Shown piece after piece: positions 22,623 through 58,958 of a stretch of DNA of 64,000 bases (positions are counted from its first letter, which is position 1; the number at the start of each line of letters is the position of its first letter). The stretch lies in NCBI GenBank assembly GCA_002269645.1, contig NIVC01002879.1, positions 47,386-111,385 of the forward strand, read 5' to 3'. The position numbers were made by a program, and so were the translations under genes. The notes beneath the pieces were generated by a model. That model saw only the letters and a list, made by a program, of their open reading frames with translations. It was not told the DNA's origin and did no database searches. This stretch comes from Macrostomum lignano. Its lineage: Eukaryota.

Positions 22623-22809
22623 TGCTGATTTATTGATAATTTTTGCCGCTTTTAATGTCCAATCTGGATTGTTGCGTCTGCTGCTTTCCAACGATTCTGC
22701 AAATTGAAATTGAAGTAGTCTGATGTTATTGCGTAATTCTAACTGAGCGAGACTGTTTCAACTTGATGGGCAACTAGTGAGACTGAGGTGGGAAAGTGAA
22801 AATACGAAG

Positions 22810-28532: not shown

Positions 28533-29422
28533 AGTAGCTCTATGGCAGTTTGGATAATGAGGCAGTAGCTCTATGCCAGTTTGGATAATGAGGCAGTAGC
28601 TCTATGGCAGTTTGGATAATGAGGCAGCAGCTCTATGCCAGTTTGGATAATGAGGCAGTAGCTCTATGCCAGTTTGGATAATGAGGCAGCAGCTCTATGG
28701 CAGTTTGGATAATGAGGCAGCAGCTCTATGGCAGTTTGGATAATGAGGCAGCAGCTCTATGCCAGTTTGGATAATGAGGCAGTAGCTCTATGGCAGTTTG
28801 GATAATGAGGCAGTAGCTCTATGGCAGTTTGGATAATGAGGCAGCAGCTCTATGGCAGTTTGGATAATGAGGCAGCAGCTCTATGCCAGTTTGGATAATG
28901 AGGCAGCAGCTCTATGCCAGTTTGGATAATGAGGCAGCAGCTCTATGCCAGTTTGGATAATGAGGCAGTAGCTCTATGCCAGTTTGGATAATGAGGCAGC
29001 AGCTCTATGGCAGTTTGGATAATGAGGCAGTAGCTCTATGGCAGTTTGGATAATGAGGCAGCAGCTCTATGCCAGTTTGGATAATGAGGCAGTAGCTCTA
29101 TGCCAGTTTGGATAATGAGGCAGCAGCTCTATGCCAGTTTGGATAATGAGGCAGCAGCTCTATGCCAGTTTGGATAATGAGGCAGCAGCTCTATGCCAGT
29201 TTGGATAATGAGGCAGTAGCTCTATGGCAGTTTGGATAATGAGGCAGCAGCTCTATGGCAGTTTGGATAATGAGGCAGCAGCTCTATGCCAGTTTGGATA
29301 ATGAGGCAGCAGCTCTATGCCAGTTTGGATAATGAGGCAGCAGCTCTATGGCAGTTTGGATAATGAGGCAGCAGCTCTATGGCAGTTTGGATAATGAGGC
29401 AGCAGCTCTATGGCAGTTTGGA
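28533..29422. repeat. 31-bp minisatellite (~28 copies)
   Basis: Unit AGGCAGYAGCTCTATGSCAGTTTGGATAATG. Confidence 0.97.
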
Positions 29423-29972
29423 ATAACGAAGATTTAGTATCTTCAGCAACTGGGGGAGTTTTGGGGTTTAACAATTCATATTGATTTACATGTATCTGAC
29501 TAAGTACTTTATAAAACTCACTAACTGAAACAATTGTAAGCATGCAGTTTGGTTAACTCAGTTAAGAGAGATTATTTATTAAAAAATTTGCTAGTCTCTA
29601 ATCGAACCGAAAGGGAACAATGTTATCAACTAATTTGCGATTATTAAATGGGAGCTGACATTTTTGTATTTAATATCATCGAAAAATTTGAATATTGCGT
29701 GCTTGAAGCTATACTTATACAGTAGTATCACGGGGATATGTGAAAATGTTAAGCACTTTCAAATTTCGAATTTCAAATGTCTATATTGATTCGCGCTTGA
29801 AAAATAATTTTAAGGTTTTATCTTATAAGCTGCAGAGGTGATGCAATATAATCTATAAATACACTTTTCTGTTACTATAAGTAGTTTACTGATTTCGAAG
29901 GATACTTTTTAATAAAACTATTTCTTGTATGATAGCATCTTTGTAGATATATTTTTTTCACTTCCAAACAAA

Positions 29973-32941
29973 TCATTCGATATACATCGAACAGCCGGAG
30001 GTAAAAAACTCTGGAACCCTCTCGTTCTGCAGAGCACTTCCCAACTTCTCTAATTGTTTCACGTCCTCCCTATCTGACCGCTTCACATGGCCAACTTGAC
30101 TGTCCCAGATGGCTATGAGCCAGATCAGGTCGATCAACTCGAATCCGGTGATGAGGCTGACGCCAAACCACAGGCCGAGAATTCCTCCGATCTGGAATGG
30201 GTAGAGGCCGATTTACATAGTCCCGATTTACATAGTCCCGATTCACATAGTCCCAGATTCACATAGTCCCAGATTCACATAGTCCCAGATTCACATAGTC
30301 CCAGATTCACATAGTCCCAGATTCACATAGTCCCAGATTCACATAGTCCCAGATTCACATAGTCCCAGATTCACATAGTCCCAGATTCACATAGTCCCAG
30401 ATTCACATAGTCCCAGATTCACATAGTCCCAGATTCACTTAGTCCCAGATTCACTTAGTCCCAGATTCACTTAGTCCCAGATTCACTTAGTCCCAGATTC
30501 ACTTAGTCCCAGATTCACTTAGTCCCAGATTCACTTAGTCCCAGATTCACTTAGCCCCGATTCACATAGACGAAATGCACAGCTCCAACTCCCATATTCA
30601 AGATTTAAACAGTCCTGATTCACATAGATAGAGATTCACATAGTCCCGGTTCACATAGACCCAGATTCACACAATCCTGATTCATGGAGCCAGAGTGACA
30701 AATTCCCAGAGTGATAAATTCCTAGAGACTCAAAGTGATGAAGATGCAATTAGTTTAAGTTGGACTGTTAACCGCATTGTAATTAGTCCTACAACTTACC
30801 TCTGACAAGATTTCAAACCATTGGTAGGTAAAGGACTCCGTGTAAGCAATGCTGTAAGGCGACTCCAGCCTAACAACCAGTCTGACAACATTTTCCTTGA
30901 CCTTCTGGGTATTGAGAGCTATTGCGGCTTTTGGCATGCTTTCTTTCAATAATTTAGTCAGGGACTCGCTGTCCCTACTCAACGAATGCACAGCCGAATA
31001 ATCTCGCAGGTAAGTGGTTCGAGCAGTCAGTGAGCTGTTCCAACTCGGTACCGCGTATTCGTCCCGGTGTTGAGCATTCCGCTGGCGCATTTTGATAAAC
31101 GATACAGCAATGGGCATGAGGTCCTCGTCACTGGGCCAGTCTAAGCTTTCTAACTGCACTTCTCTGGACACAGAATGGCAGGGTTTCCACATGGTCACGT
31201 GATTAGGCGCCGAGTTCAATAATTTAGACCACCATCTGTCGTGACAGCGGATCCTGTCTAGAGCCTCCTTGGGCAGCGTCGGTCGAGGGGCGCCGTCTTC
31301 ATCGGGCTGGACGTGATAGCAGAGGCTGGAGGAGCTGGCACCGGTGGGGCTCCGGTGAGAGCGGCAGCCGCACTTCTTGAACAGCTCTGCTTGAGCCCAA
31401 GTGTACAGATCGTCTTCAGGTGAGCGGACAAAGGCTCGACTTTCGCTGGTTCCGTTGACGACCGAACGCACCGTTCTGTAAACAACCTCGTCAGGTGGCT
31501 TGTCGGAGCACCGCTCCCTGCCTTTGTAGTTCAGCTTGTGCTTCTCCAAAGTTGATATTCGAAATGTGGCTGAGGTGCCCGACGCAATGATGTAGGACTG
31601 GTAGCCTGCGGGTTGGAGTGTTATGGATTGCAGTTAGTATTGATTAAAGTACAGTATAATGAAGAGTAGAGTAGAATTAGACAGTATATCGTAGACAGTA
31701 TAGACTTAAAGCGTATAGTCGAGGGTATAGAATACATCATGCAGAGAGTAGAGTAGAGCGTCAGCCTAATGGTCTCAACAAGCAGAGCTACACGTGCCAG
31801 ACGACTCATAGAGGTAGGCAGCTCTGCAGTCCAAGGCCCTGCAAGACTCTGACAGACTCGCTTGAAATCGACCTCGAGATAAGTCAAGGAGCGAAGCTGT
31901 TGACTCCAGCTGGCAGGGCCACGCCATCTTTGACCATAGGTAAAAATGCTTGTTGATAATAGAGAATACAGTATAATGCTCGATGAACTGTAACACCTAT
32001 TCGCCCATACCATTAAACGGATAGGTGTTCCTCGGATGCAGTATCGCACTAATTCCATTGGGCTGTTCATTATTTGCTAGGATCTGGTTAAGCGGGAATT
32101 CCTCCGGATTGGTGGTTAGATACTCGGTCAGCGACAGGCCCTTGTCGTAGTAGGTCTTTGAAGATGCTTTATACGCGGCGTGTTTCTGATAGTGGGATTC
32201 GAAAATGCTGCTGTCAGTGAAGAGATTTATGAGCAGGATGGAGTTAAATTTAGACCCATGATCGGCCATCTTGTTGCTTTCTGACGGACTAAAAGTGAGG
32301 CAGTCAAAGTGATGGTGGTGCTGGATTAGACTAAAATTGCTTGGTTCGCAGGGTAAACGCTTGAATCTGCAGCTAAATATGCTGCTTTGGTAGTGCATAC
32401 TCAGCCAAGAGTCAAGGAAAGTCTTGTCAAGCCTGACTATCTCAAACATCTTGTAGTACAGAGCCTTCATCCTCTCCATGTAGTCCGTTATAGATTCGTT
32501 TCTTCTCTGCAAAGAGGACTCATCGTTGAACCAGCCGTCCAGGCGACGCGTGTAGTGAAGAAGCAAGTCAGTCCAGTTGCGTTCAAAGGACTGGGCCAAG
32601 AAGCTCTCGGAGATGGGCTTCAATCCGCAGATTGTGAGGTCAGGGAATTCAACCACGTTCTCGTTCAGCATCATAGTCGAGGCGACGCCGCTGTTGTGGA
32701 AGTCAATAATTAGCAAGATTAAGTGGGTAGTGCAGCAGGCCAGAGCCATCAGCAGGATCACTGACCACACTATCTTCCGCCACAGACTGCCAGCTGTAAG
32801 TAAATTTGGCAGGCCTTCGACTGTGGTGTGCTGGGCGCAATGGCCCATCGGCCCGGCGAGTTGCTCACATCTTGCGCAGCCGTCAGAGACACTGTTTCTG
32901 GGTGTTGAGGCCAGCGTGTCAATATCTTGCGGCTCGAGCAT
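29973..32941 (-). CDS. DEG/ENaC (amiloride-sensitive channel family) subunit; exons 32941-32011, 31605-30800, 30191-29973 (651 aa)
   Basis: GT-AG joins are in frame. TM1 WRKIVWSVILL, FPDLTIC, CGC, WPS, ENVVRLVV..EILSE|IGGILGLWFGVSLITGFE (GxS selectivity filter). Confidence 0.93.
30205..30670. repeat. 16-bp minisatellite in the ENaC intron
   Basis: Unit GATTCACATAGTCCCA, switching to GATTCACTTAGTCCCA midway. Confidence 0.95.
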
Positions 32942-33539
32942 CGCTGTGGCTGAATAGAGCGCGCCTCGACGGGCACGCTGAATCCACAGGTGTATGCGTT
33001 CCGACTATAATATTCTCAATTCATGGACCAACCTGGCTCAATTCATGTCGAGTGTCTATATAAGCCAGCTTGATCATTCTATTTTAATAAATCAATAAAT
33101 CTCTTTAGTTTATGGTCGCTATCGATAAATATAACCCGAGGATCATATGTAGTCAGGAGCGGCAGGATCAAACTTAGACCATCCTCATCCAGTTGCGTCG
33201 AAAATATATGCGAGTTGCAACCTTAGATAGATCTTATATTTCTATTGTGGCATTTGTGCCACGGACTTTGTGAACTTTTCCTGTTTTCCGTATGCACCCC
33301 ACCCCCCTTGTCTGAATCCCTGTATTGTCTGTCTGGTTCCTCGTCTGTCTCTGTCTGTCTGTCTGTCCGCATGTAACTCACTTATTGTCTGTATCTCTCC
33401 ACTGTCTACGAAGCTCGGGTGTACCCACCCCAATTATACTGCTATAAATGTGCCTCCCACTCTGCTTGGGAAGGGCACATCTTTTCCGATATCTCTCTGA
33501 AATTCTCAGTTCTGCAGAGCGAACTATCAGGTGCTACAA

Positions 33540-36500
33540 GCCAGCCTTTGCCTTTCAAAGTTATCACAATGGCGACGACGAGTTCCGCTCTGGAAGGCAT
33601 CCCAATTCTCTCCGCGAACACAGATATCGACGTGTATCTGGAGAGACTCCAACACTACTTCACCTGCAGAGGTGAAGGATGAGGCTAAGGTGGCTACACG
33701 AGTCACAGCAATTGGCGAGGAAGCCTATTCAGTGCTGCGCAACCTCTGTCTTCCCAAAAAGATGGCAGACAAGTCATTCCATGAGCTAACGGAGATCGTC
33801 ATGCGTAATCACTACGCTTCACAGCCATCTGAGCTGGCAGCCCGCTTTCGCTTCCAGCGTCGTCTGCAGCAGCCGGGCGAGACCTTCGCAGAGTTCATCG
33901 CCGGTCTGAAGGCCTTGTCGGCCCATTGCAACTTTGGCAACACTATGGAGGAGCGGCTCCGAGACCAGCTTGTCTTCGGCCTGCTCAATGACACCTTCCG
34001 AGTGAAACTGCTGGAGGAGGTGAAGCCCACCTTTAAATCTCTGCAGCAGAAAATTCTCTCCTTGGAGTCTGCAGAAAAGTCATCGCACGAGGTGGCGCCT
34101 GCGGAAGCTGCGGCGGCGTCCACAGCCGCCAGCAGTGCAAGCTGCGGGACGCCAAGTGCCACGCCTGTGGCAAGACTGGCCACATCCGTAAGGTTGGCCG
34201 CTCGGCCAAGCTGCAACTCCGCTCAGATGCCAATCTTCGCTGTTCAGCCGTCTGGAAGCAACGCAGGCCCGACGGTGCAGCTGCAGGTTAACGGACAGCA
34301 GTGCCGATTCGTTATTCGTTATTCGTTATCTGGATCTGCGGTCATTCTGATCCCGCAGAGCCTGCAGTAGAAGCTGTTGCCGTCGCTGCATCTGTCTCCG
34401 TCCGCAGCTATCCTGCGCACCTTCAGCGATTTCGCCCCATCGGCCAGGCGTCCGTCACCTTCCAGCTCGACGGTCAGCAGCTGCAGCTCCTTCTGCTTGT
34501 CGTCACGCAGGGCGACACCCCGCTGCTGGGGCGCGACTGGCTGGCCAGACTGCGGCTGAACTGGCCGAGCATCATGGCGCAGGTCCACTCCGTCTCTGCA
34601 GACGACGGCGTCGGGGACCTCATCAAGGAGTTCTCCTCTGTCTTCGAGGACGGCCTGGGAGAATTTCAGCATGGCCAAGTCCGGTTGCAGGTCACCGAAG
34701 GCTGCGGGAACGTGTGGACGCCGAGCTGCAGTGCATGGAGGCCAGCGGAATCATCAAGGCGGTCAAGCACAGCAACTGGGCGGCACCCATTGTGCCAGTG
34801 GTGAAGAAGGACGGCAGCGTTAGGATCTGCGCTGACTACAAACTCACTTACAACGCGGCGAGCAAGACGGAGCACTACCCGCTGCCACGCATCGAGGACC
34901 TCTTCGCCAAGCTCGGCGGTGGCTGCAAGTGGTCCAAGCTGGACCTGTCCGAGCAAGGCCTTCCTCACCATCAACACGCCAAGAGGACTTTTCCAGCTAA
35001 ACCGCATGCCTTTCGGCATCACCAGCGCCAGCGCCATCTTTCAGCGGACGCTGGACACCCTGCTGGGGGCCTCGACGCCGTCCAGGTCTTCGTCGACGAC
35101 ATCCTCGTCACGGGCGGCACCTTGCAGCAGCACAAAAATAACCTGGCCCTAGTCCTGCATCGCCTGCAGGGCGCTGGCCTTCGCCTGAACAAAGACAAGT
35201 GCCAGTTCTTCAAGGACTCCGTCGAGTATCTGGGCCATCGCATCGACGCCAACGGCCTCAGTCCGCTGCCTGATCGAGTCTCCGCCGTCCAGGATGCGCC
35301 GGCTCTAAAAGATGTCAGCCAGCTGCGCTCGTTTCTCGGCATGTTGGCACAGTATTGCAAGTTTCTGCCAAACCTGTCCACCGTGCTGGCACCGCTCCAC
35401 CAGCTCCTGGCCAAGAACACGTGCTGGACCGGGGAGCAGCCGCAGCAGCGGGCGTTTGACGAGGCGAAGCAATTGCTACTTCAGTCACCGGTGCTCGTGC
35501 ACTACAGCCCGGACCTGCCTCTACGCCTGGAGTGTGACGCCTCACCCTACGGCTTGGGTGTCGTGCTGACTCATCGCATCGGCAACAAGGACTGCGCGGT
35601 CGCCTTCGCCAGCCGCAGCCTAACGGCAGCTCAACGCGGCTACTCGCAGCTATAGACAAGAAGGCGCTGACCATCATGTTCGGCTTGCAGCGCTTCCACC
35701 AGTTCCTCTACGGCCGCCGGTTCACCATCGTCACCGACCACTTGCCGCTGCTGGGTCTGCTGGGCGAGCGCAAGGCCATCCCCGCGCACGCAGCCGCGCG
35801 CATGCAGCGCTGGGCCATCCGCCTGGCGAGTTACGACTACTCGCTGGAGTTCCGGCCGACAGAGAAGCACGCCAACTGCGACTCGCTCTCGCGGCTGCCG
35901 CTACCGCAGCTGTTTGAGGAGGAGGCGGCTGTCAACTCGCTCCTGCTCGACAAGGGCGCAGGGTTTGCCATCACAGCGCAAGCAGTCTCGCGGCACACCA
36001 GGACGGACGCAACGCTGGGCCGCGTGCTGCGCTGTCTGCAGGCCGGTGAGTCCATCAGTGCCGACCTCATCGACTTCGCCCGCCGACAGTCCGAGCTATT
36101 GGTCGACCAGAGCTGTGTCCTCTGGGGCGCCAGGTCGTGGTACCGACGGCGCTGCGACAGCGAGTGATGCAGGAGCTGCACCAGGCGCATCCCGGCATCA
36201 GCAGGATGCGTGCTCTTGCCCGCAGCTATGTCTGGTGGCCAGGCATCGACAGCGATCTGGAAGCTGCGGCCAAGGCCTACCGCACCTTCCAGCTTAACCA
36301 GGCTAAGGCACCGGTATAGTCGTGGCCATTCCCGACAGAGCCTTGGGAGCGCCTCCATGTCGACTTCGCCGGGCCCGTCAACGGCTACGTGTATCTGGTG
36401 GTGGTGGACGCTCGCAGCAAGTGGCCGGAGGTGCAACAGATGCGCAGCGCCACGGCGACCTCCCCCATCGCGACAGCCAAGGCATCCCTCGCACGTTGGT

Positions 36501-37087
36501 GTCCGACAACGGGGCTCGATTTGCCTCTGCCGAGTTCGCAAAGTTTACCAAGGCCAACGGCATCATTCGGTACATCTTCTCGGCGCCGTTTCATCCTGCC
36601 ACGAACAGCCAGGCCGAGCGCTTCGTCCAGGTGCTCAAGCGGCACCTGCTCAATAACGTCCACTTCGACGCGCGGCTGCAGCGGCTGCTGCCCTCTTACA
36701 GCAACACCCGGCCCGCACAGCGTCAGCGGTGTCGCTCCCAGACAGCTGCTCATAGGCCGGCGGCTCCGTGGCCGCCTGGATCTCCTGAAGCCTTCGCTGG
36801 CCAGCGATGTGCAGCAGCGACAGGAGCGGCTGCTGCAGGAGCGGCGGCCCGCGCGCGAGTTCCAGCCAGGTGACCGCGTCCTCTTCCGCGACTACAGCGT
36901 CGGCGCAAGGGCCGGCGATTCGCCGAGCTGGGTGGAGGGCGTCATCGAGAGTGCTGGCAACCGAAATAGCACCGTCGACTCGGAGCAGGGGCGGCACGTT
37001 CGGCGCACCGACCAGCTGCTGGCGGCGCCCGCCGCCGACACTAGCGTTCAGCCTGCCGATGCCAGGCCAGCCTTTGCCTTTCAAAGT
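33540..37087 (+). mobile_element. Decayed Ty3/Gypsy (Mag-like) gag-pol with frameshifts and stops; no recognisable LTRs
   Basis: Gag (YLERL..FRFQRRLQQPGE..RLRDQLVFGL), zinc knuckle CHACGKTGH, RT (PIVPVVKKDGSVRICADYK..RMPFG..FVDDIL), RNase H (CDASPYGLG..TDHLPL), and integrase (HPGISRM..WERLHVDFAGP..SDNG..HPATNSQAER), spread over several frames. Confidence 0.95.
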
Positions 37088-38269
37088 ATTTACACCTATG
37101 AAGCTGGATCTTTATGAGTAGTCCAGAATAGAATGCCTCGAGGCAAGAATGCCTACGAATCACATCTTTCTACTGCAGCTGTTTGCATAGATCTTATATT
37201 GTATATATAAGCAACGACACCTCGAGTTAAACATTGAGCTGCTCATATTTTTTCCAGTATCTAACATTGCATAAACTCTTACTTAATGAGTAGATCTGTA
37301 CGCATCTCCGCCTTTTCTCAGTGTGGCTACTGCCTCATTAAAAATGCGATAGAGCCACTGTCCCATAGTAACTCACTTGATGTTGCTAAACTTGGTGAAA
37401 ATTGAGCGAATATTCATTTAATGAAAAAAATTCTAAGAACTCAAAGAACTCAGCATCAGTTAAAACAAAATTTAATAGTCAGCTGACTCAGCTGACGACT
37501 TGCAAACACAAAAGAAAAAAGAAAGCATTAAAAGTGCGCTGCTGTAGTTTTATATTTATCGAATATTAATAAAATTATAATAGATAATTTCATATGCATA
37601 CTGTTGGATGAACTTTTTAGCTTAAAAAACGAACGACAACATAAAAGAATACATTAATAGATGATAATAAGTGGGTAAACAAAAGCGGTGTTAACTATAA
37701 CAACAATATTCTACAAGTAAATGTATAGTATGTAGATTACTACTAAATAAATAAATAGATTTGTACGTTTCAATTAACAAGACTGTGGTACTACTAAATC
37801 GAGCAAATTCTAATGATGTCTGTCTTTCGGAAATTCGGCATAGCATAAATAAAAAGCCAATAGCAGGTGTTAGAAGGGCAAAAATGTCAATGTAAAACAG
37901 ATATCAATCAAAAGTTCACCTAGAGACATGCGGAGATGGGAGAGGAATATAAAATATAAATTCATTCTTATTCACTTAATAAATTTGCTATGAATCTATC
38001 AATCAATTGGAGTCAGCAGTAAGATTTCAACGCATAGCGGCTTAAAAAACGTACATACTTACTACAAACTATATGAGTAGTATATAACTTGACTATTCGA
38101 AGCAATTAGTTGCTATAGAACTGCACAGCGGAGCTTTTTTTATAATAAACAAAATATTATACTACTTACTTATTGGAAACTAGTATACATGGTAGCAACT
38201 GAACCATTAGCGAGCTCGCATTTATTATCTAGGAATAGGAAATAGTATTTGGGAAGAGACCAAGGGAAA

Positions 38270-38525
38270 AAGCAGATGTACATTGGGGAGGCTGGGGGTG
38301 GTGCCGATCGATAATGTGGCAGATGTATATTGGGGAGGCTGGTATGGGAGCCGATCGATAATGGGGTAGTTGTACATTGGGGAGGCTGGGTGGGGTTGGT
38401 GCCGATCGATATTATGGCAGATGTACATTGGGTAGGCTGGGGTGGGAGCCGAGCCTATCGATAATGGGGTAGATGTACATTGGGGAGCCTAGGGTTGGTG
38501 CCGATCGATAATGGGGCAGATTTAC
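38270..38525. repeat. Degenerate ~45-bp tandem repeat
   Basis: Recurring GCCGATCGATAATGGGGYAGATGTACATTGGGGAGGCTGG. Confidence 0.8.
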
Positions 38526-39734
38526 ATCAACAGATATCCCAGTTAATTTCCTGTTAAGCCAAAAGCGACCTAGCACAAGCAATAGTAGCAACATATTAAG
38601 CGGGCCAGCAATTTCGTGCAATACGAGCAATTCGGACAAAGGAAAGCCCATTAATGGGTTAAATTCTAACAGCTAATTGAATTGAAAGTTAGCAAGAAAA
38701 GAAGAATAAAAAGCATTCTTGCGACGATAAAAGCAAAATTGACAATAGATAGAAAGCATGCAAGGATCCGCCCGCCGTAGAACTGAATTTGCAAACAGTA
38801 GTGGGGTTTGGGTAAAAGAATATAAGGATAATAAAACTCTGCTGGACAAGTTAGGAAATTTCAGCAAAAAAAGAAATTGGCTACCATGCCAACCCGGTAA
38901 AGACTTTTAATATAATTTGATCCAAGTAACAGAAAGTGGTTTTCTAAGAAAACACGGAAGGGTGACCGCTTATGAAGTAAAAGGACAAAGCGTACTTTTA
39001 TTGAGTAGAATAGGCGACAATGTACAGACATGCCGGCAATGTGCAAAATTCAGAATTTAAAAGGAAATTTCATTTTCAACCGAATAAACTACTTACATTG
39101 TAAAATGATAAGTAGTATAAATATAAAATTAAAAAAACAAGGATTGCGAATAGTCGAACAAAGAGTAATTCTGAATTCGGGCAGTTTTGCATTTCTCCAG
39201 CGTAGCACACAATAAACTAAATTGCGTATAGCATAAAAAACTTTAAAACAAAAGCAGATTAGCAGACCGAGATTTAGGCGGAACAACACGTGTTCAAAGG
39301 AACACGCATACAAATAGAGGTGGGAGAAGAGAGCAGCAAGAGTTGAACGTTTGAGTTAAATTAAAAAGCAAATAAATAAGCATATTATAAAAACATGGTA
39401 CATATCAATTATATTGGTAATAAAAAACTAAAGCGAAATGTGTGTGTGGAAATTAATTTACAAGACTACTGCAGCTTCTATTTTACACGTTCCAGATGCA
39501 TTCTAAGAACAAATTATTTTTATTGTTGCTGTTAGATTAAATTAGTTAATTTAATTCAATTTAAACAAAGCAGCGCGCGCGCGGAAGTGCTTATGTTACA
39601 AAATAAACAAATAGACAGGCATATGTATAAGCATAAATTATCAAATTGATCTCTCAAAAGACCTGTATGCATATATAAATATCCAGTTGTTGTCATTCTA
39701 TAAAGAAACTGTTTGCACAGTCAGCAAGCACAGT

Positions 39735-45732
<5,998 letters not shown>

Positions 45733-45734
45733 TC

Positions 45735-46351
45735 AGACGACTGAGTATGGTGGCTCATGACTGAGCAGTGTGGCTCAGATGACTGAGCAGTGTGGCTCAG
45801 ATGACTGGGCAGTGTGGCTCAGATAACTGAGCAGTGTGGCTCAGATGACTGAGCAGTGGGGCTCAGATGACTGAGCAGTGGGGCTCAGATGACGGAGCAG
45901 TGTGGCTCAGATGACTGAGCAATGTGGCTCAGACGACTATGGTGGCTCATGACTGAGCAGTGTGGCTCAGATAACTGAGCAGTGGGGCTCAGATGACTGA
46001 GCAGTGTGGCTCAGACGACTGAGTATGGTGGCTCATGACTAAGCAGTGGGGCTCAGACGACTGAGTATGGTGGCTCATGACTGAGCAGTGGGGCTCAGAC
46101 GACTGAGTATGGTGGCTCATGACTGAGCAGTGGGGCTCAGACGACTGAGTATGGTGGCTCAGATGACTGAGTATGGTGGCTCATGACTGAGCAGTGTGGC
46201 TCAGACGACTGAGTATGGTGGCTCATATGACTGAGTATGGTGGCTCATGACTAAGCAGTGAGGCTCAGATGATTGAGTATGGTGGCTCATGACTAAGCAG
46301 TGGGGCTCAGATGACTGAGTATGGTGGCTTATGACTAAGCCACCATACTCA
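45735..46351. repeat. ~22-bp hairpin-forming minisatellite with terminal foldback
   Basis: Units GACTGAGCAGTGTGGCTCAGAT and GACTGAGTATGGTGGCTCA(GA)T. Confidence 0.92.
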
Positions 46352-46573
46352 AAAATCAACCTTATTAATACTTACTTATTGAAACTTTTCACTATGAAAC
46401 TAAACTTAGATCATTACAATATTTATTGGAACTGACAAATCATAAACTCATAAATTACAATTTTATGTAATATATTCTTTAAATGGCAAATATCTATTTT
46501 TTGCCTTAGTGACTAAGCTAACAAATATATACCTTGTTTTTAAAAAGTAAATAAGTTGTGAGATAGATATAGG

Positions 46574-46784
46574 CATACATGCGCAACTGCTGGCCAATCT
46601 GGCCACCGTAAATTGTGGTGGACCAGGGGTAAGTCGCAAAAATTATAAGAGAGTCATAGTTACTCCTGCCGTTTTCCCAAATTGTATTAATGTTGCTCTA
46701 GGGTTTCTTTCACAGGTAAGTTGCATTTTTGGTAAAAAAAGTAAGTTGCATGGCCAGTGTAGATCAGGGGGTTGCGCATGTATG
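46574..46784. mobile_element. MITE A (211 bp): 14-bp TIR CATACATGCGCAAC, 8-bp TSD GATATAGG; carries a 28S rDNA-like cassette
   Basis: TSD at 46566-46573 and 46785-46792; perfect TIRs. CAT termini plus 8-bp TSD suggest the P (or hAT) superfamily (inference). Confidence 0.9.
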
Positions 46785-47837
46785 GATATAGGTTCAACAG
46801 CAAAACTCAGAAATCTAACAGATTTGCATATAAAGATTTATAGAACTAGTTGAATATGTAACTTGTAAGTGGGACAGCCAATTAATTTTTTTTCTAAATG
46901 CCTCTTCTAATTTCTCTAGTGTTATAGACATCTGTATCTATAGTTTTTGATTAATTTATCAGTCATTCCAGCCTAAATCTACCATGTTCATGTCAGTGGC
47001 TTATGTACATTATGGCAAGTTGTTTACACTTGCAAGCTTATGATTCTAAACTTATCAAAGTCAGCTGCCTTTATTCATATAAAATAGCTTATGTATTTTT
47101 CATTGCTATTGAACTGAAAGTAGAAAGCTGTTTTGCTGAGTATAAACTATAGTGGTCAATCTCTAGGGGTATTCTAGTATCTGTAGTTTAAATTACAAGT
47201 AGTTTTAAGACAGGAATATTGAACTAAGAAGATCCTTAATACATATAAATTGAAGCCTTATAGGGTTCTAACTAACCTAAAGCTAAAGCTAGTTGGAGGA
47301 ACTCAGATTATCAAAATTGGGCTTCATAACTATAAGAATATTAAATTAATAATTGAATTGACATTTATTATAAAAAACAATGTTTTGTATTTGAATAACT
47401 ACCTAGCATATTAATATATCAAATGTCAAATGCCCATAGCAAAGAAAAATGCTAGCTTTATTAGAAATATTTGCCTAAAATTTACTTAGCTTTATTTGGT
47501 ATTTTGGTAAAAAATAGTATATTTTGGAAAAAAGGTTGTGGTTAAGAGATAAAGGGAGTGCCAACAAAATACAAAAATCTTAATTAAATGCAATAATATT
47601 ATTCTAAAGAAATAAGGTATCAAAATTTTCTGCAATGGCAAGTTGTCATAAATGCGAAATAGACATAATATTCATTTTGTTATATTGCATATGCAAACTA
47701 CCAAATGTTGCAATGCAAAAAAGAATTTTTATTGTTGCAACAAAAAAGGTCCATTATTATAAGAACCGAGGTTGCACATTTTGTATAGAATTTTTTATGT
47801 ACATTTCCAATTTTTTGACATACTTGGGATAGAAAAC

Positions 47838-48140
47838 TCTAGTGTATACCCCTATTGCAGCGCATGGCTTAAGTACGCCAGACGCCTACACAACCTGCGC
47901 CACGCTGTGAAATGACTTACCTGTGAAAGAAACCCTAAAGCAAAATTAACGCAGTTTTGGGTAAACGGCAGGAGTAACTATGACTGTCTTATCAAGCGTA
48001 AATGCCTCGGCATCTAATTAGTACCGCGCCGCGCCGTACTAATCGCTGCTCGTCGTACGCGCCGCGCCGCGCTGTATTAGATCCGCGCCGGACGCCGTCC
48101 GCCAAAATGCCCATGCGCTGCAATCAGGGTGTATACTAGA
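47838..48140. mobile_element. MITE B (~300 bp): ~30-bp imperfect TIR ending ATTGCAGCGCATGG; carries a 28S rDNA-like cassette
   Basis: Left TCTAGTGTATACCCCTATTGCAGCGCATGG vs reverse complement of right TCTAGTATACACCCTGATTGCAGCGCATGG. TSD unresolved (CTAG at both ends). Confidence 0.8.
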
Positions 48141-48639
48141 CACCTTCTTGACTATGGCATGTCAATCTCTGTTACCAAATTAGTTAGAACCAATTGGGAA
48201 TGGTGTCTAATGGGCCCTAGGGAGGGAGAAAGGCTAAGCCCCCCCCCCCTGTTCCCTGTTAGGCCACAGGTTCCTATATGGCCTCCTACTTTTAGTATTT
48301 TTACTTTGGAGTTTCCAAAGAAATATTTTGAAACATTATTTTCCTTTTTTAGAGTTTTAATTCTAGAAACAAACTAGTTTCTGTACAAGCACAAGCCATT
48401 GAAACCCACAGATTTTGAACCTGTGGAATTCTAATCCCAGGTCCCCAGGAACAATTTCTGTATGTATTCAAAATCTGAAATCATATTCAAACAAAAGACT
48501 TGTTAATAGTTAAGATAGACATAAAAATAAAATGAAAAAAATTGTCCAAAAATAATATTTTAAGTAAGCACTGATCTCATTAGCTGGGATATTGCACAGA
48601 ATATCAGGCAATGTTTTTTGAAAACATATATTAGCAAAC

Positions 48640-49430
48640 TCTGACCTCTTGTCTCTGCTTCTTTCTATGATAGATCCTTAGAAACTTATCTTCTTTTCTG
48701 TTTCTCCCTCTTTCTCTCTCTCTCTCTTCTCTTTTTTCCTAATCCTATTTCTTGTTTTCTCTCTCCTCTTCTTTTGTCTCTTCTTTCACCTTTCTAATTT
48801 TTGTTCTCTACTTTCTTTTTTCTCCACTTTCTCTTCTCTTTTTATTTTCCTTTGCTTTTTACTTTCTTCTCTCCCCACTTTTCACTCTTCATTCTCCTCT
48901 CACAACACTTCTCTCTTCTCTCTTTTCTATTTCTATGCTCTCATTTCTTATTTTTCCTATTATCTCTATACTTTCTCTTTTTTATCTCAATCTTTTTCTA
49001 TCTATTTTTTCCTGTCTCATCTTTTCTCTCTTATCTCTAAGCTGTATTCTCCTCTCAATTTTTCCAACTTTACTCAACTTTCTCTCTTTTCTTCTTTTCT
49101 CTTTCTTTTTACTTTTTCTTGTCCTCTCAATTCTCCCTTTTATTTCTTCTCCTTACTCTACTGCTTTCTCCCATTGTCTATCTTTTCTACTCTCACAATT
49201 TTTCTCTTTCCTCTCATCTCTATAATCTTTCCCCTCTCTTCTCTCTTTTTGCCTGTCTTTCTTCTTTTTTCTATTCTTTCTACTCTAACATCTCTCTTCT
49301 TTATTCTCTCATCTGTTTTCCTTTCATATTTCCAATTTCACTTTTCTTTTCTTTTATTTTTCCTCTTTCCTTTCTTCTATTATTTTTTCTCTCTTTTCTT
49401 TTCTTTACTTTTTCTCTTTTCTTATAATAA
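48640..49430. repeat. CT-rich low-complexity region
   Basis: Direct inspection. Confidence 0.85.
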
Positions 49431-52400
49431 TACAAAAATAAATATATCAAATATTTTGAATCTAAATAACCAAAAGTTTTTTGATAGAGATCTGCTAAAT
49501 AAAATAAATAAGCAATTAAATGTATTCATGTTAAAGTTTATTTAGCTTTCTATTTAAAAACCTTTAAATTACAAAAAAACAACTTAACAAAGAGTTAAAA
49601 ATCATTTTTAAAATATTTTTCAATGAAAATTTAAGTTTAAGATATTGCCCTTTAGTTGTTATTGCTCCCTATTATGGACATTCCTTTGATTGATCTTCTA
49701 GACACTCCTCTAGACATTCCTTTGTCAATTAGGTTTATTTTTACAAGAGACAAGGTATAAAATTTTGGAAATTGTATCTTATGCCTAATTTTAAGCTACA
49801 ATTTAGGTTTCAAAATGTAATTTCTCTTAGGCCTATTAAATAATGCTTAAGCCTTATAAAAGGAAAATCAGTAGTTATGAGACCCTACCTAAACTATACT
49901 CAAAATTTTCAATTTTGATGTGCAATTTCAAAGTGCATACTCTACTATATAAACACAAAATCTTTCTAATAAGAATAAATATCACAAATTTTAAAACTTC
50001 AAAAGACAAAAATACCAAGCAAAATGTAATAAAAACTTACATCTTGAAGAATCTACACAATTTTAGAAATTGCCAGATGTCCCAGATGAATATATTAGAC
50101 CAAGTGATTACAATTCAATTTAACTATAAAAAACTTAGCTAATTTCTTAAGTTTTCAGTACAAACAACATGTACTAACTTAGGATTAATATAAATGATAT
50201 TTTCCTTAAACCAATGCGAAGTTTATTAATTATTGCTGATGCTGATAAAGTTAAGTTAATTACATGCGAGCACGCGTTAAGTTGAAATTGATTTAAACAT
50301 TTGTAAATAATGCGCAACAATATGCGCAATGTAAATATAAACTTGAGAGCTCACTAGCTTGCTTTACTTGACAAGAACTTTTAGAAAGAGCACAAATGTC
50401 AGCTATCGTCATCGATTCAATCTATAGTTTAAGCTTGTTTCGGGTAAATTGAAAATAGGCAAGTTTAGTCAGCTTTTTGAGGTTGCTGATAACAGCTTAA
50501 ACAATATGTGTCTAACAACTTTAAGTTTATGATTGATAGTAGGCTAAAATTTGCTTTATTGTTTACTTTTTTAAGTATAAATTAATCAAATATTAAAAGT
50601 TATTATGAATAAAGAATATTTTCTTGTTGACGTTTGAAACACAAATTTGAACAGTTAAGTTTCTTGTAAATAGCTGTATTGAGTTATATTTTCGCTTAAA
50701 ACTGCGATCGTCCATTAGAAGTAAGTTATTTAATGTGTGTGATGTTTCATCAAGCCAGGAACCTTTTGTACTTTGGCAGTAGATGTTATATGTTATATAT
50801 TTTATTGCTTCATTAGATTGTAATTTTAGCCGGCTTTGTCAGGCCCCTAGCCTGATATAATTTATTGTAATGTAAAGTCAAGAAGTGATAGACTGATAGG
50901 GCCTAGTAAATAAATAGTCTCACATTTAGCTATGAGACGTTTTGGCGAAGTTTCGTTTCCACTAGTAATGTTTTGGCACATTCTGTTTTTGAGATCTTTT
51001 TTAATTTCAATTGTATTCTTCAATTTTGTTTCTATAGTATTTGTTAATTTTGCTGCTTTGTTACTTTGTCTTTATCATTAGGCCTACTTTTTTATTTCTA
51101 GGCCCTAAGAGTGAGCTGTTTCCTTTTTTATTTTAACTCTTTTTGTTTCCTTTTTGCTACTTTTGAAATGGGGGCTATTTTCAAAATAGATAGCTATATG
51201 CCAATACTGCAGCTACTAAGGCCTAAGTTCAAATTTGCATGCTTCAAGCCAAAAAAATAGTGCAGTGTATTTATTTGAATTCTGCATTGTTTCTGCATTT
51301 GAAGACAGATTGACTAAATTATTCTGTCTTTTGTAGGTCCTTAATTTTATGGGAAAGGTTATTAAAAATATTGTAATCAAGAGATCATTCTTTTGTATAG
51401 TCTAGCCTATATTATTTTTTTAATTAATTGGAATATTACAATACTTTGCCTAAACATTTTTTTGTGATTTGCCAAAATATTACTTTGCTAAAATATCATG
51501 TAGCCTCATATTTCTGTTGCAGCGCCCTTTTACTTATTTAAAATATCCCACTGTTGACACCAAGTTGTTGCAGGGGATCCTTCTGCCTATTCAAAATCCC
51601 ACCGTTTTGTCACCAAGTTGTAGCAGGCCTGTTACCTCTATCTTCCCTAATTCTACTAGATATTACCAAGTTGCTATAGGCCTTATAATTTCTTACCTAG
51701 TTGCACTAAACTACACTGGATTTTTACTATTTTCCTAGAATTTAATTCTTACACTTACATGTACTTTTATACTTTATGGGCTATCGTTGCTACGAATTAC
51801 CCCTGGTAGCTTCAGTGCCCGAGTGGCAAGACACTGCTAACTACTGCTAAACTCGTATTCTATAGTCCAAACACGGCATTTACCTCAGATCGAGGGGTTT
51901 CCGGCTTCCTTTATTACTGTCTCTCACGACTTAGAGCTGCATCACGCTTAGCTGCAACAGCCTGGACTATTTACTTTCTTCACTGGGTATTTCCACCCTT
52001 TTTACTGGGTATTCCACCCTTCTTACTGGGTATTCCACCCTTTACACTGGGTATTCCATCCTCTTTACTGGCAATCCCTGCCTATCACTGTACTAGCAAA
52101 ACACTCTTGCTATCCAACACGGTAACTTAGTCTGCAATACTGCTTCAAATGACTAATTCAGAAGAACCAAGAAATCTTAATTTCCTGTTAACTGAGTTAG
52201 GAACCCGAAAGGTCGAGGTCGAGTTCGAGGTTTCGTTTTATTTTGGCCTTGTATTTATACTAGTTAGAGTCTTGTTTCATTGGCTTATGTATCTAACATT
52301 AAAACAAATGAATAGCTAAAACAAATTATTCGCATCATTAAAACAAAATATTATTCAGTAAAACAAATTTACGAATTAAAACAAATCATACAGTACTTGT

Positions 52401-52722
52401 TATTTTGGCGGGAATTTAATTTCGCGGAAACATACTAATTTTCTAGGAATAAACATAGGCCCTTCTACATTTCTTCAGAGAATTTTTGTTTTTAAATGCT
52501 ATTTCCTAAATTATAAATTTCTCATTTTTTGCTAGAAACAAATTCTATAGAATAGAAAACAGCACCAGAAATATAAATTTTGAAATATTCTCATATAACT
52601 ATTTAAATCAATTGTGTTAGGCCTTTTTTTCCTTACTTACCTGAGATACTTTAGGTAAATAGCCTATATCTTTAATCTATATTGAAATAACTAAATTTTT
52701 AAAGCTATTACTTATATTTATT

Positions 52723-53021
52723 CATACATGCGCAACCTCTGAAATTCGGTCGGCCATGCGACTTAGTTTTAACAAAAATGCGACGTAGTTTTTGGCCAAA
52801 AATGCGACTTACATGTAAAAAAAACCCTAAAGCAAAATTAACGCAACTTTGGGTAAACGGCAGAAGTAACTATGACTGTCCTATTAAGCCAAAATGCCTC
52901 GTCAGCTACTTAGTACTACTACTTGATTATTTTTTCGGGTGGGCATTTTTGCGACTTTCTTGGTTGGCCGCCAAATCGGTTGGCTGGATCGGCCGACTCG
53001 GCCGACTGTTGCGCATGTATG
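52723..53021. mobile_element. MITE C (299 bp): TIR CATACATGCGCAAC, 8-bp TSD TATTTATT; carries a 28S rDNA-like cassette
   Basis: TSD at 52715-52722 and 53022-53029; same TIR as MITE A, opposite orientation; subterminal GCGACTT repeats. Confidence 0.9.
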
Positions 53022-53626
53022 TATTTATTACTGATTTCATTTGTTACATTTTGAAGCCACCTTTTTGTCTATTCATATTTATGAAAAATCTGGTTATCTG
53101 TCAGTTTTATTATTTTGTCTATTATAAAAGTTTTTAAGCCTTAAAGATATATTAAATTGGAATTGGTCAATCATTTGGTTTGGCTTTTTCGTTTCCTGCT
53201 TTATTTTTTCTATATTTTTCTAATGTTATTATTTTTCTAGCATTTTTTTCTGGCATTTCTAGATTAGCAATTCAATAACTTGATTCAGTTTAGCAGTAAT
53301 TTTGAAGTAATTTTCTCATTTTAAAGGAGAATAGTTGATTAATTTTAAATTAGATATGAACCAACAGAGGAAAGGCAAGAAATGCATTGAAAGAAAAGAT
53401 AGAAGAGTAGAAAAAAACTAAACAAGGAGAGAGATGAGAGAAAAGAAGAGATAAGAAGAGAGAGGAGGTGATAGACTAGATCAGAAAAGAAAAGAGAGGA
53501 GACACAAAAGAGCATAAAGAAGAGGAGAAAGGAAAAGAGAGAGTAGATAAGAGAAGAGAGAATAAAGAGGATATAAGAGAAAAGAGGAAAGATGATAGAT
53601 TAGAGAAGAGAAATAAGATTGAAGAG

Positions 53627-54865: not shown

Positions 54866-55170
54866 GGGTTGTAGCCTAGCTTCAAAAGTTTAGGGATTCA
54901 ACTCTTGACCTACTTATAGTAGTTTGTGTCTTTGAGCAAGACACTTAACTCTGCATTGCTTCAGTTCACCCAGCTATAAAATGGGTGCCAGCATTAGCTG
55001 GGATACTCGTAATTAAGGGTTTGTGGTGGCGACCCCCAGGCCTTGGACTGAACAGCCATATGCAGCCTTCAAATTCTGATGTGCAATAGCTCCTGCTGAG
55101 CTGTCTGTTGCACATTTGCAATTGGGGCAGGTGTAATTAAGTATTTTTTATTTTTTATTATTCTATTAGA
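54866..55170 (+). mobile_element. CORE-type SINE, copy 3 (more diverged)
   Basis: GTGTCTTTGAGCAAGACACTTAACTCTGCATTGCTTCAGTTCACCCAGCTATAAAATGGGT; 3' end matches copy 2; T-rich tail. Confidence 0.8.
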
Positions 55171-55961: not shown

Positions 55962-56230
55962 GTGCCCCCTACCCCAGATCTCGATTCCTATTGGCCAGCC
56001 AGTCACCCCTCTCCCCTACCCCAGATCTCGATTCCTATTGGCCAGCCAGTCACCCCTCTCCCCTAACCCAGATCTAGATTCCTATTGGCCAGCCAACCAC
56101 GCTGCTCCCCTAGCCCAGATATCGATTCCTATTGGCCAGCCAACCACGCTGCTCCCCTAGCCCAGATCTCGATTCTTATTGGTCAGTTATAGTTACTCCC
56201 TGCCCCAATCTTGATTCTTATTGACCAGCC
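55962..56230. repeat. 47-bp minisatellite (~5 copies)
   Basis: Unit CCCAGATCTCGATTCCTATTGGCCAGCCAGTCACCCCTCTCCCCTAC. Confidence 0.9.
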
Positions 56231-57287
56231 ATATTTAAAAAGCAATATATTTTTAAACTATTCAAATCTGAAAACAAAAATGTTACGAATGTGTCGCTAT
56301 ATTTGCCAACTAATGTTAATAGTTCTTTTGCCTCTAAAAATAATTATAAAACTATAAGTGTTGTCATTTTCTCCTTATTTTTTAGTTTGGCTCTTGCCTC
56401 GTAGTTGCTTTGCGCTTCTTTGGCTGTTTTTGCATTGCTTATTTTTGTTTATAGATAATAACTTATTGAATAGGAAATGGTTTATAGTTTCTGTCAACAA
56501 GAGTTATTGGAATATAATTTAGCTTAGCCATTTTGCAGTGGGTGGATGATATTATTTGCTTTAAAAAAACTGCAGACTGTACTCTAGTGTCTATAATACA
56601 ATGCAACAAATAATTCTATATGCCCCGGGTTATAGCACATTTAGATATTCTCTCTGTATCTGCCTTATTAAAAATCTGTGCGAGAATATTTAATCAAAAC
56701 TGTACAGTTCAATTGCTGTGTGAAATAATTTCAATGTTGTAATTGCTTAATTTTTTGTTGCTTTTTCGCAGTAACAACAACCTTTTTTGTGTTATCATTT
56801 CAATAACTATAACTGCGCTAACAGATGGTTTCTGCTGAGCCTTAATTATTTTTCTACTTATTTGTGATCTCGTCTCTACAGAGCTGACCTCCCTTTTTAG
56901 ATGGCGCGCAACAACATCCATCGAACTCCCCACGACTGTGCCAACCAACCAATCTCTAAGAAGTTTTTTATTCTGAAAAAAATTAATACACTTTTTTCTT
57001 TTGACAAACGAATACCCTTTTAAATAAGCTGATTGTCATTAGCGCTGTGTCATCTGTCTGTCAGTAATTCAAAACGATTTGTCGTTTTTTTCGCTTTTTA
57101 GCTGTCTGTTTGTCTGTCTCCCAGCCTGCCTTTCTTGTTTCAAATTCGTTCGCTAGTTTTCAGTTTGACTTTATTCTGGTCCGAATATTGCCTTGTTTTT
57201 TGTGAATGCCTTGGTGTCTGGGTCCAATTAAATTTGACGGACAATATTGGACTTATCATTGTCAGATTCACAGTCGCTAGGTCACCA

Positions 57288-57730
57288 CCCTCCCAGATCC
57301 TCAGTTGCTAGGCCAGCCTCCCAGATCCTCAGTTGCTGATCCAGCCTCCCATATCCTCAGTTGCTAGGCCAGCCTCCCAGATCCTCAGTTCCTGATCCAG
57401 CCTCCCAGATCCTCAGTTGCTAGGCCAGCCTCCCAGATCCTCAGTTCCTGATCCAGCCTCCCAGTTTCTCAGTTGCTAGGCCAGCCTCCCAGATCCTCAG
57501 TTGCTGGGCCAGCCTCCCAGATCCTCAGTTGCTGGGCCAGCCTCCCAGATCCTCAGTTGCTCGTCCAGCCTCCCAGATCCTCAGTTGCTCGTCCAGCCTC
57601 CCAGATCCTCAGTTGCTCGTCCAGCCTCCCAGATCCTCAGTTGCTCGTCCAGCCTGCCAGATCCTCAGTTGCTGGGCCAGCCTCCCAGATTCTTAGTAGC
57701 CGAGCAAGCCTCTCAAATCCTCAGTTTTTC
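57288..57730. repeat. 28-bp minisatellite, same family as 6878-7445
   Basis: Unit CCTCCCAGATCCTCAGTTGCTNNNCCAG. Confidence 0.93.
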
Positions 57731-58242
57731 ATAACGGCAAGCTTCAGATTTTGTCTCGCCCGTCAGATTTTGTCTCGGTGTCCAAATAAAAATAATTTAA
57801 ATTTGTTTTGCTGCTGTAACCCACGTACTGGCCTGAACCGTTTTCCTCCTCTTCTTGTATTACCGCTTCCCTTGGGCGTTGTGGAATGCTCCGTGTGTAT
57901 TTTTCTGCCCACTTTGTTTTTTAAATAAACCACTCCGTCTGGTTTTTTGTTGCCGTGATGCTTTGGTTTTGGGGGATTTAGCCAATATATATTATTTTTT
58001 CTCCGTTTCAAAGCGCGGAAGACAGTCTGAGTCTAATAAATCCCTTATAATTGTCGATTTTTTGGTTGAATCGCATTCTAAAACTGCAAAATCGAGAACT
58101 CTGTGTTTGTCATTTGTTACTCATAATTGAACCTGTCTTGTTATATAGGAAGAAAAGTATGCGGGCTTTCTAGGAAAGTACGAACATCCCACATCTGTGG
58201 CTTGTGGCCTTGTGCCTCAGCACTGCATCACATTTCAAACAT

Positions 58243-58900
58243 TTTCTCCTCCTTCCAGGAGATGCCCAGCATCCTTCTGTTAGTCTTCTTCTCCTTCCAG
58301 GAAATGCCCAGCATCCTTCTGTTAGTCTTCTTCTCCTTCCAGGAAATGCCCAGTATCTTCTGTTAGTCTTCTCCTTCCAGGAAATGCCCAGTATCTTCTG
58401 TTTGTCTTCTCCTTCCAGGAAATGCCCAGCATCCTTCTGTTAGTCTTCTTCTCCTTCCAGGAAATGCCCAGCATCCTTCTGTTAGTCTTCTTCTCCTTCC
58501 AGGAAATGCCCAGCATCCTTCTGTTAGTCTTCTTCTCCTTCCAGGAAATGCCCAGCATCCTTCTGTTAGTCTTCTTCTCCTTCCAGGAAATGCCCAGCAT
58601 CCTTCTGTTAGTCTTCTTCTCCTTCCAGGAAATGCCTAGAATCCTTCTGTTAGTCTTCTTCTCCTTCCAGGAAATTCCCAGAATCCTTCTGTTAGTCTTC
58701 TTCTCCTTCCAGGAAATTCCCAGAATCCTTCTGTTAGTCTTCTTCTCCTTCCAGGAAGTGCCCTGAATCCTTCTGTTAGTCTTCTTCTCCTTCCAGGAAA
58801 TTCCCAGAATCCTTCTGTTAGTCTTCTTCTCCTTCCAGGAAGTGCCCTGAATCCTTCTGTTAGTCTTCTTCTCCTTCCAGGAAATGCCCAGCATTCTTCT
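58243..58900. repeat. 42-bp minisatellite (~15 copies)
   Basis: Unit TTCTTCTCCTTCCAGGAAATGCCCAGCATCCTTCTGTTAGTC. Confidence 0.95.
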
Positions 58901-58958
58901 GTTATTATTTATGTCAAAAGCTCTCAGTCGCTCTTTATCTTTCTTCTCCATTGTCTAG

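Follow-up and report, generated by a model that had tools for sequence, protein, structure and literature searches.

A 28S rDNA-derived module with a damaged R2 target site in small terminal-inverted-repeat elements of Macrostomum lignano

The sequences derived from ribosomal DNA (rDNA) that occur in transposable elements (TEs) were brought together in a 2024 review of rDNA–TE interplay; they comprise short interspersed nuclear elements (SINEs) with 5S promoters, the terminal-repeat retrotransposons in miniature (TRIMs) Cassandra and Ajax, SINE28 and the intergenic-spacer (IGS) repeats of Pokey and mPok. A miniature transposable element with inverted repeats (MITE) that moves by cut-and-paste and carries 28S coding sequence is not among the cases of this review. 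The present analysis concerns a stretch of 64,000 nucleotides of DNA from Macrostomum lignano (GenBank assembly GCA_002269645.1, contig NIVC01002879.1, positions 47,386 to 111,385 of the forward strand; this whole stretch is referred to as the window and its first letter is position 1). Three small elements bounded by terminal inverted repeats (TIRs) and denoted A, B and C were found in it to carry a copy of the helix 69–71 region of the 28S gene, in which the cleavage core of the R2 and I-PpoI targets is destroyed, as had been proposed in a first-pass annotation of the same DNA.

Pokey and mPok of Daphnia (piggyBac superfamily), which come nearest in kind to the present case, resemble it in that a DNA transposon with MITE derivatives is tied to the same 28S site and carries an rDNA-derived interior, which consists of IGS 'A' repeats and a 48-bp piece of internal transcribed spacer 2 (ITS2). 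In our own reading of the text of the Pokey paper, the flank preferences around TTAA fit CTC-TTAA-GGTAGCCAAATGCCT. Unlike the elements described here, Pokey has TTAA duplications and piggyBac inverted terminal repeats (ITRs), carries spacer rather than 28S coding sequence and inserts in the rDNA. Elements A and C have 8-bp target-site duplications (TSDs) at AT-rich non-rDNA sites, and their cargo is a damaged version of the target region; the TSDs are not TTAA, and the diagnostic pairing of TTAA duplication with piggyBac ITRs is thus not that of the present elements. SINE28, the 5S-derived SINEs and the Cassandra TRIMs are likewise non-autonomous mobile elements with rRNA-gene sequence. They are, however, retroelements, and the 5S pieces supply a Pol III promoter, whereas the carrier here is a cut-and-paste element with TIRs and TSDs and its 28S piece has no known promoter role. 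A SINE28-like element would be recognized by an A-rich or long interspersed nuclear element (LINE) tail at its 3' end and by the lack of TIRs; the present elements end in TIRs, have fixed 8-bp TSDs and have no tail. In some R2 lineages of fish (Kojima et al., 2016; PMC5035012), the 3' untranslated region (UTR) includes 28S-like sequence of 110-130 bp that corresponds to the stretch immediately upstream of the R2 site. Pickup by a mobile element of a diverged copy of the 28S sequence just upstream of the R2 site, as found here, does therefore occur. The fish elements are, however, retrotransposons sitting in the rDNA, in which conservation is lower in the 28S-like part than in the true flank; in the present elements similarity to 28S is highest in the upstream 33-mer (31/33), and a DNA transposon outside the rDNA serves as carrier.

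Short host-gene fragments that lie between TIRs, are amplified and are shuffled between families are familiar from transduplication by Pack-MULEs and from hAT and CACTA captures. The usual cargo in these cases is protein-coding exons, whereas the cargo here is a core rRNA fragment at an insertion hotspot. The module is probably an rDNA passenger that was captured, bears one inherited scar and has been shuffled between two MITE families; among the options offered by the first-pass annotation, a relic of rDNA targeting is the closest to the evidence. As the evidence stands, the capture is of interest but of an ordinary sort. It adds a case beyond those of the 2024 review, in which the known elements carry 5S promoters or spacer repeats, and it shows the exchange of a module between two TIR families. 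The lesion lies on the most heavily parasitized eukaryotic rDNA site (R2, Pokey, I-PpoI), and cassettes collected genome-wide could record the fate of an ectopic R2 target.

Element A occupies 46574-46784 (211 bp, minus strand, the strand being given as the 28S-sense orientation of the cassette), element B 47838-48140 (303 bp, plus strand) and element C 52723-53021 (299 bp, plus strand). The ends of A are exact 14-nt TIRs (CATACATGCGCAAC and GTTGCGCATGTATG), and those of C are identical to them. Perfect 8-bp TSDs are present on both flanks of A (GATATAGG at 46566-46573 and 46785-46792) and of C (TATTTATT at 52715-52722 and 53022-53029). In the 64-kb window CATACATGCGCAAC has four exact matches, compared with 0.44 matches expected at <=2 mismatches; a near-match at 18489 was discarded as a chance occurrence, no subterminal motifs following it. 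In C the subterminal direct repeat (A)ATGCGACTTA is present three times at 52756-52824 (plus strand) with a spacing of 22-24 bp, and a fourth copy lies at 52950-52962. Repeats of the ATGCGACTTA type are located at 46628-46638, 46715-46725 and 46740-46750 in A, and these motifs are presumed to be transposase-binding sites. Since A and C share the 14-nt TIR and the direct ATGCGACTTA repeats and are flanked by perfect 8-bp TSDs, they have moved by cut-and-paste. With TIRs, duplications, a small size and no coding capacity, they are genuine MITEs of the cut-and-paste type, and their 8-bp duplications resemble those of hAT or P elements. The open frames across the elements, including one across C, have no homologues among 5.8 billion proteins. 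The TSDs of A and C have the 8-bp length found in hAT elements, but the termini begin with CATAC instead of the usual CAG/TAG (hAT type YARNG). Duplications of ~8 bp are also possible for P, Merlin, Novosib and Zisupton elements, and CATAC is nearer to the CATG start of P elements. A transposase with A/C ends was not found in the 64-kb window.

The first-pass annotation had treated the three copies as one family of small TIR elements. They are indeed all small and TIR-bounded, but two families have to be distinguished, with two copies of the A/C family and one copy of the B family in the window. The TIR of B is an unrelated imperfect repeat of 30 nt, TCTAGTGTATACCCCTATTGCAGCGCATGG (TCTAGTGTATACCCC...), with an inverted repeat that is 87% complementary; the element is CpG-rich and has no 8-bp TSD, possibly having TA instead. 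The insertion sites of the three elements are AT-rich and unrelated to each other. Element A is a deletion derivative in which the downstream half of the cassette has been lost. Relative to C the deletion crosses the hairpin GCCAAAATGCC...GGCATTTTTGC, and A is a C-like element minus the segment between the arms of this small hairpin. Further copies were sought with cassette and MITE motifs in viral contigs, JGI metagenomes and GTDB genomes, and none was found; the metagenome scan yielded 101 loci, nearly all of which are genuine protist or fungal 28S genes with a natural A variant and none of which contains this MITE. A literature search for the TIR or cassette strings gave no match.

The three elements have only an internal block in common (blast against the window). 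Within this block B and C are 88% identical over 111 nt, and A is 84-88% identical to B and C over 85-96 nt. The 28S-derived cassette of B extends over 47914-48029 (plus strand; strong part 47943-48029, with the 71-mer initially described at 47959-48029) and that of C over 52835-52914 (plus strand), while A retains the 33-mer GGGAAAACGGCAGGAGTAACTATGACTCTCTTA at 46646-46678 (minus strand), which corresponds to R2 target positions ~-36 to -4. Searches with blastn against a real 28S gene (metagenome contig L021) gave E=5e-18 for B (87 nt), E=1e-15 for C (80 nt) and E=1e-9 for A (33 nt, of which 31 are identical). The 22-mer AACGGCAGGAGTAACTATGACT occurs three times in the window at <=3 mismatches, with zero occurrences expected. 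The strings quoted in the first-pass annotation were all recovered in their places, its 28S sequence is in accord with the consensus of Rfam LSU_rRNA_eukarya, its ungapped identities of 58/71 for B and 51/64 for C were reproduced (52/71 for C at full length), and its statement that A keeps the upstream part alone was borne out. Judged from these alignments, the 28S origin of the cassettes is far beyond chance. The segment 47914-48029 of B also aligns to positions 2200-2314 of the Rfam LSU_rRNA_eukarya model (22.6 bits, E=7.5e-4 in a 161-nt search). This match appeared only when 161 nt were searched and was reported neither in a 6.8-kb search nor in a search of the whole window. With 22.6 bits against a gathering score of 50 and with 116 of the 3401 model positions covered, it does not represent a functional 28S gene. 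There is no rRNA match at the Rfam gathering threshold and no other rDNA-like sequence in the 64-kb window.

A match that arose by chance, or from everyday rDNA debris such as an orphon or a pseudogene fragment that has nothing to do with transposons, would be in keeping with the short length of the matches and with nothing else. The probability of this explanation is practically negligible: E values of 1e-9 to 5e-18 against real 28S together with the TSD evidence refute it, each of the three copies is internal to a TIR-bounded element, the two copies with perfect TSDs lie at unrelated sites and no further rDNA-like sequence accompanies them. The placement of the cassettes within transposons rather than among loose rDNA debris, as first suggested, has thus held up in all three cases, two of them with perfect TSDs.

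The copied region is domain IV of the 28S molecule, helices 68-71, and extends from ~-80 to +35 around the R2 site; the passenger has a length of 80-115 bases. The weakly matching 45 nt upstream of GGGTAAACGG falls in a part of the 28S gene that varies widely among eukaryotes and may be close to the host's own sequence. Because it may be so close, the uneven divergence of the module from the consensus is not evidence of selection.

In B the 28S core AGGTAGCC is replaced by TCAAGCGT at 47992-47999 (plus strand); the equivalent lesion in C is TTAAGCCA at 52884-52891. The altered segment straddles the R2 nick AAGG|TAGC as well as the I-PpoI site CTCTCTTAAGGTAGC and the TTAA used by Pokey. A concentration of mismatches at the cut site, instead of a uniform spread, had been claimed in the first pass and was confirmed by random placement of the mismatches, in which an equal clustering in an 8-nt window was obtained for B in 0/200,000 permutations (P<5e-6) and for C with P=1e-3. 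The description of the lesion as a block of eight mismatches was sustained as to clustering but not as to its nature. When gaps are allowed, whether by Infernal or in a global alignment, AAGG/T is found to have lost 1 nt and the AAA run to have gained 1 nt within it or next to it, with 3-5 substitutions besides. The 8-nt block is thus for the most part a shift of the register by one base, flanked by two single-base indels around AAGG|TAGC. At its smallest, the lesion amounts to AGGT -> TYA together with an additional A in the AAA run.

The first-pass annotation had also described the core as replaced differently in C and had put up a hypervariable core for testing; neither independent replacement nor hypervariability is supported. 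The cores TCAAGCGT and TTAAGCCA are identical at 5/8 positions, compared with 0/8 and 1/8 for the respective comparisons with AGGTAGCC, and the start of the lesion, TTAT.AA, is also present in A (T-AA after CTCTTA). Because the B and C cores are this much more alike to each other than to 28S and A shares their start, the cores represent one lesion shared by descent and not a hypervariable site. The other shared derived states are a G-to-A change at -25 in A, B and C and C28G in B and C. On these comparisons the core lesion is a single event that preceded the divergence of A, B and C and was inherited by all three.

Several simple origins of the altered core were considered. A local inversion or reverse complement of AGGTAGCC was ruled out by eye. 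The B/C lesion region GACTGTCYTATTAAGCCAAA (47981-48000 in B and 52873-52892 in C) matches the 28S stretch GACTGTCTAATTAAAACAAA, which is situated ~130 nt upstream, at 16/21 positions and its own site at 12/21. The lesion could be a patch templated by this upstream stretch, although the C-to-G change required for such a patch is absent from A, and blastn with the candidate stretch GACTGTCTAATTAAAAC gave E=0.18. A TTAA-duplication footprint of a Pokey-like insertion would take four events, compared with five for the model of substitutions plus indels, and the two are not distinguishable.

According to the capture reading, the module would be a passenger in non-autonomous class II elements that was copied once from a host 28S gene. 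Capture may have taken place by template switching in repair synthesis, or by mobilization of rDNA beside an inserted element. The right end of the 28S homology in B is formed by a 13-nt fold-back palindrome, ATTAGTACCGCGC/GCGCCGTACTAAT (48017-48043, no strand assigned), degenerate further copies of which are found at 48062-48090. A fold-back palindrome with degenerate copies nearby is typical of aberrant repair synthesis; the palindrome of B fits such a process. The module was also acquired by a second TIR family, that of B, including one subterminal repeat of the A/C type. This repeat, AAATGACTTAC, is located in the module of B at ~47911-47921, and the module has therefore moved between TIR families as a block. 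The lesion itself may be a scar at the rDNA insertion hotspot, which could already have been present in the donor rDNA copy or could have been made on an ectopic copy by an R2-type nick or by a TTAA-type insertion and excision. Alternatively, it may be a chance complex mutation. Persistence of the module would need no function, as it rides on the TIRs.

An origin of the element inside the rDNA would be another way of linking its ends and its cargo. The TIR would then be derived from, or matched by, the cryptic 28S end GACGCGCATGAATG, and a transposon inserted upstream would have mobilized the stretch in between. The A/C TIR GTTGCGCATGTATG (46574-46587 in A, 53008-53021 in C) is identical at 11/14 positions to GACGCGCATGAATG, which is colinear with the cassette and directly continues it in the 28S gene; a shuffled TIR reaches 11/14 in a 61-nt stretch with P=0.002. 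The right end of C is also identical to AGTGACGCGCATGAATG at 13/17 positions (by eye). The resemblance of the TIR is, however, a post hoc observation, and Smith–Waterman comparison of the 37-nt ends gave P=0.04-0.06, with blastn E values of 3-5. In C, ~90 nt of non-28S sequence with a subterminal repeat lie between cassette and TIR, and the left arm has no similarity to 28S. The ends of B show no significant similarity to 28S (P=0.25-0.48). Birth of the element in the rDNA is considered unlikely.

The requirements of R2Bm for its target, as established by experiment, consist of the motif RUM, A(-31)WWWGCNNNA(-22), and the motif RASIN, T(-6)TNANN|T(+1), with insertion at TTAAGG|T; cleavage is lost with T+1A and is severely reduced when -6, -5 or -3 is altered (Wilkinson et al., 2023; PMC10499050). 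In the numbering of the R2 target, the cassette extends from -36 to +35. RUM is present at the correct spacing in A, B and C, in which changes are confined to -33, -25 and -23, all of them unconstrained positions in the Bombyx rules; over -34 to -22 the sequence is GTAAACGGCAGGA for B, GTAAACGGCAGAA for C and GAAAACGGCAGGA for A. RASIN, by contrast, is broken in each copy (TTATCA|A in B, CTATTA|A in C and TTATAA|T in A), by A-3T in all three, by T+1A in B and C and by T-6C in C. The cassette is therefore like the R2Bm target in RUM and in spacing but unlike it in RASIN, and is not usable by those rules, which predict a site that would be bindable but uncuttable; the rules come from Bombyx R2 and not from this host. 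The 15-bp I-PpoI site is also altered, reading CTGTCTTATCAAGCG in B and CTGTCCTATTAAGCC in C.

A number of points weigh against simple capture of a passenger. All comparisons between copies rest on three copies, every one of them from the 64-kb window. The prediction of a site that is bound and not cut is not expected under a purely neutral model, and random placement would put the lesion precisely at the site of cleavage with a prior of ~0.1-0.15. Identity among the copies is 88-94% in the 33-mer, compared with 80-83% in the adjacent 48 nt, again for three related sequences; this higher conservation could hint at constraint or at conversion by the rDNA. Finally, a 130-bp metagenomic satellite, which is described below, is an independent 28S repeat of unrelated source in which the R2/I-PpoI core has likewise been destroyed.

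These points bear on a functional explanation in which the cassette is kept as a decoy or landing pad, binding an rDNA-targeting protein without being cut and thereby titrating the protein or recruiting it to MITE copies. The N-terminal zinc-finger (ZnF)/Myb domains of R2 or a homing nuclease would be candidates for the bound protein. The idea appears physically plausible by the R2Bm rules, and the intact RUM of all three copies next to a RASIN broken at positions that abolish or severely reduce cleavage (T+1A, A-3T), the 33-mer as the best-conserved internal segment and the independent satellite with the same pattern would all agree with it. If true, a MITE-borne, cleavage-dead R2 landing site in many genomic copies, with a satellite as its counterpart in another organism, would be a sponge or a recruitment platform, and a decoy of one transposon against another would be a new kind of mobile-element interaction. 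On the other side, neither an R2 element nor a His-Me nuclease nor an autonomous partner was found in the 64-kb window, the binding rules were derived from Bombyx R2, the difference in conservation rests on three related copies and neutrality would give the same appearance to a 28S fragment that has one lesion. Element A, moreover, lost the downstream half and yet stayed mobile, as its perfect TSD shows. A decoy function is possible but unsupported, and is regarded as decidedly improbable.

The first-pass annotation had further offered a mimic of helix 69 (H69) at the RNA level, and a transcribed structured RNA that imitates helices 69 to 71 would account for retention of the H69 loop and of most of H71; in B one H71 pair has changed from U-A to G-C. 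The stem itself is damaged, however. In B and C two of its pairs are disrupted, one by G12A and one by C28G, with no compensating change; NC marks in the Rfam alignment show a further disrupted pair in H71, and A has no H71 altogether. The Rfam score, as given above, is far below the gathering score, and a promoter, for which no search was made, was not found. As the broken H69 pairs are uncompensated and A lacks H71, an RNA mimic is disfavoured and is given very little credence. Capture of an rDNA passenger is retained as the preferred explanation of the module.

Pieces of the same 28S region were encountered in other contexts in the metagenomes. Contigs Ga0209788_1116772 (L063 1-1319) and Ga0209788_1130407 (L076 1-1216) contain a 130-bp tandem satellite derived from the same 28S stretch, ~-75 to +55 of the R2 site. 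Its flanks are kept (AACGGCGGGAGTAACTATGACT ... CAATGCCTCGTCATC) and its core is replaced (TACTTCTATAGTGC, 4/14 identical); this satellite was found only through a scan with a motif of this very 28S region. In three further loci (L001, reverse complement of 600-640; L007; L047) a 31-nt 28S piece, GTAAACGGCAGGAGTAACTATGACTCTCTTA (-34 to -4), stands in non-rDNA surroundings, with G+C-rich sequence after it. Its upstream boundary and its CTCTTA end coincide with those of the part of the MITE cassette that matches 28S well, and no open reading frame (ORF) was found in the 1.5 kb that follow the 31-nt leader in L047. Metagenomic 28S genes or pseudogenes that are interrupted at or beside TTAAGG| were also observed (L006, L013, L019, L025, L031, L045, L066, L069/L098 and L077), a pattern of R2-type or intron insertions. 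An 11-nt duplication, TGACTCTCTTA, is present at the junction in L069 and L098, and two partial upstream copies are arranged in tandem in L077.

The region of the window around the three elements (46-54 kb) is AT-rich, with 32-35% G+C. A large Ena/VASP exon at 44392-45726 (minus strand) encodes a WH1 domain and Q- and P-rich regions. It lies ~850 bp from A, which places A and B in the 5' flank or first intron of an Ena/VASP gene. The nearest relatives of the encoded protein are only 45-79% identical over WH1, which indicates a sparsely sampled lineage, with the highest WH1 identity to molluscs; the contigs of these nearest relatives (ERR1719xxx, Ga0193xxx) are presumably from the Tara Oceans metatranscriptomes. 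Besides this WH1 exon, the window encodes a rhodopsin-type G-protein-coupled receptor (GPCR), fragments of ASC/DEG-ENaC channels and a Ty3-type reverse transcriptase (RT)/RNase H. A protein search with the ASC-channel ORF gave no matches, and for three ORFs of the window no identical protein was on record. A pyrimidine-rich (CT) low-complexity tract of ~750 bp (48680-49430, plus strand) is located between B and C.

Minisatellites are exceptionally dense in the window (4092-12465, 20297-30671, 38272-46340 and 55966-58904), the periods being 14-47 bp and the copy number reaching 119. Individual arrays are located at 22809-24490 (14 bp), at 20297-21634 and 28532-29422 (31 bp) and at 8463-9337 (25 bp), and one 28-bp family has a first locus at 6878-7430 and a second at 57285-57726. 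Among the long ORFs that were called mechanically, many are artefacts of these arrays. Further repeats include a pair of inverted repeats at 41963-42162 and 42747-42946 (200 nt each, 97% identical, 585 bp apart), which may be a foldback element or a long-TIR transposon, and another dispersed family at 14154-14446, 18667-18953 and 54884-55162 (75-83% identity, one copy inverted). At 33531-37117 (plus strand) lies a degenerate Ty3/gypsy element whose gag, RT and RNase H are each in a different frame, and a fragment of a Tc1/mariner-like helix-turn-helix (HTH) ORF is found at 15348-15863 (minus strand). A tRNA-Arg(CCT) gene is located at 40437-40509 (minus strand).

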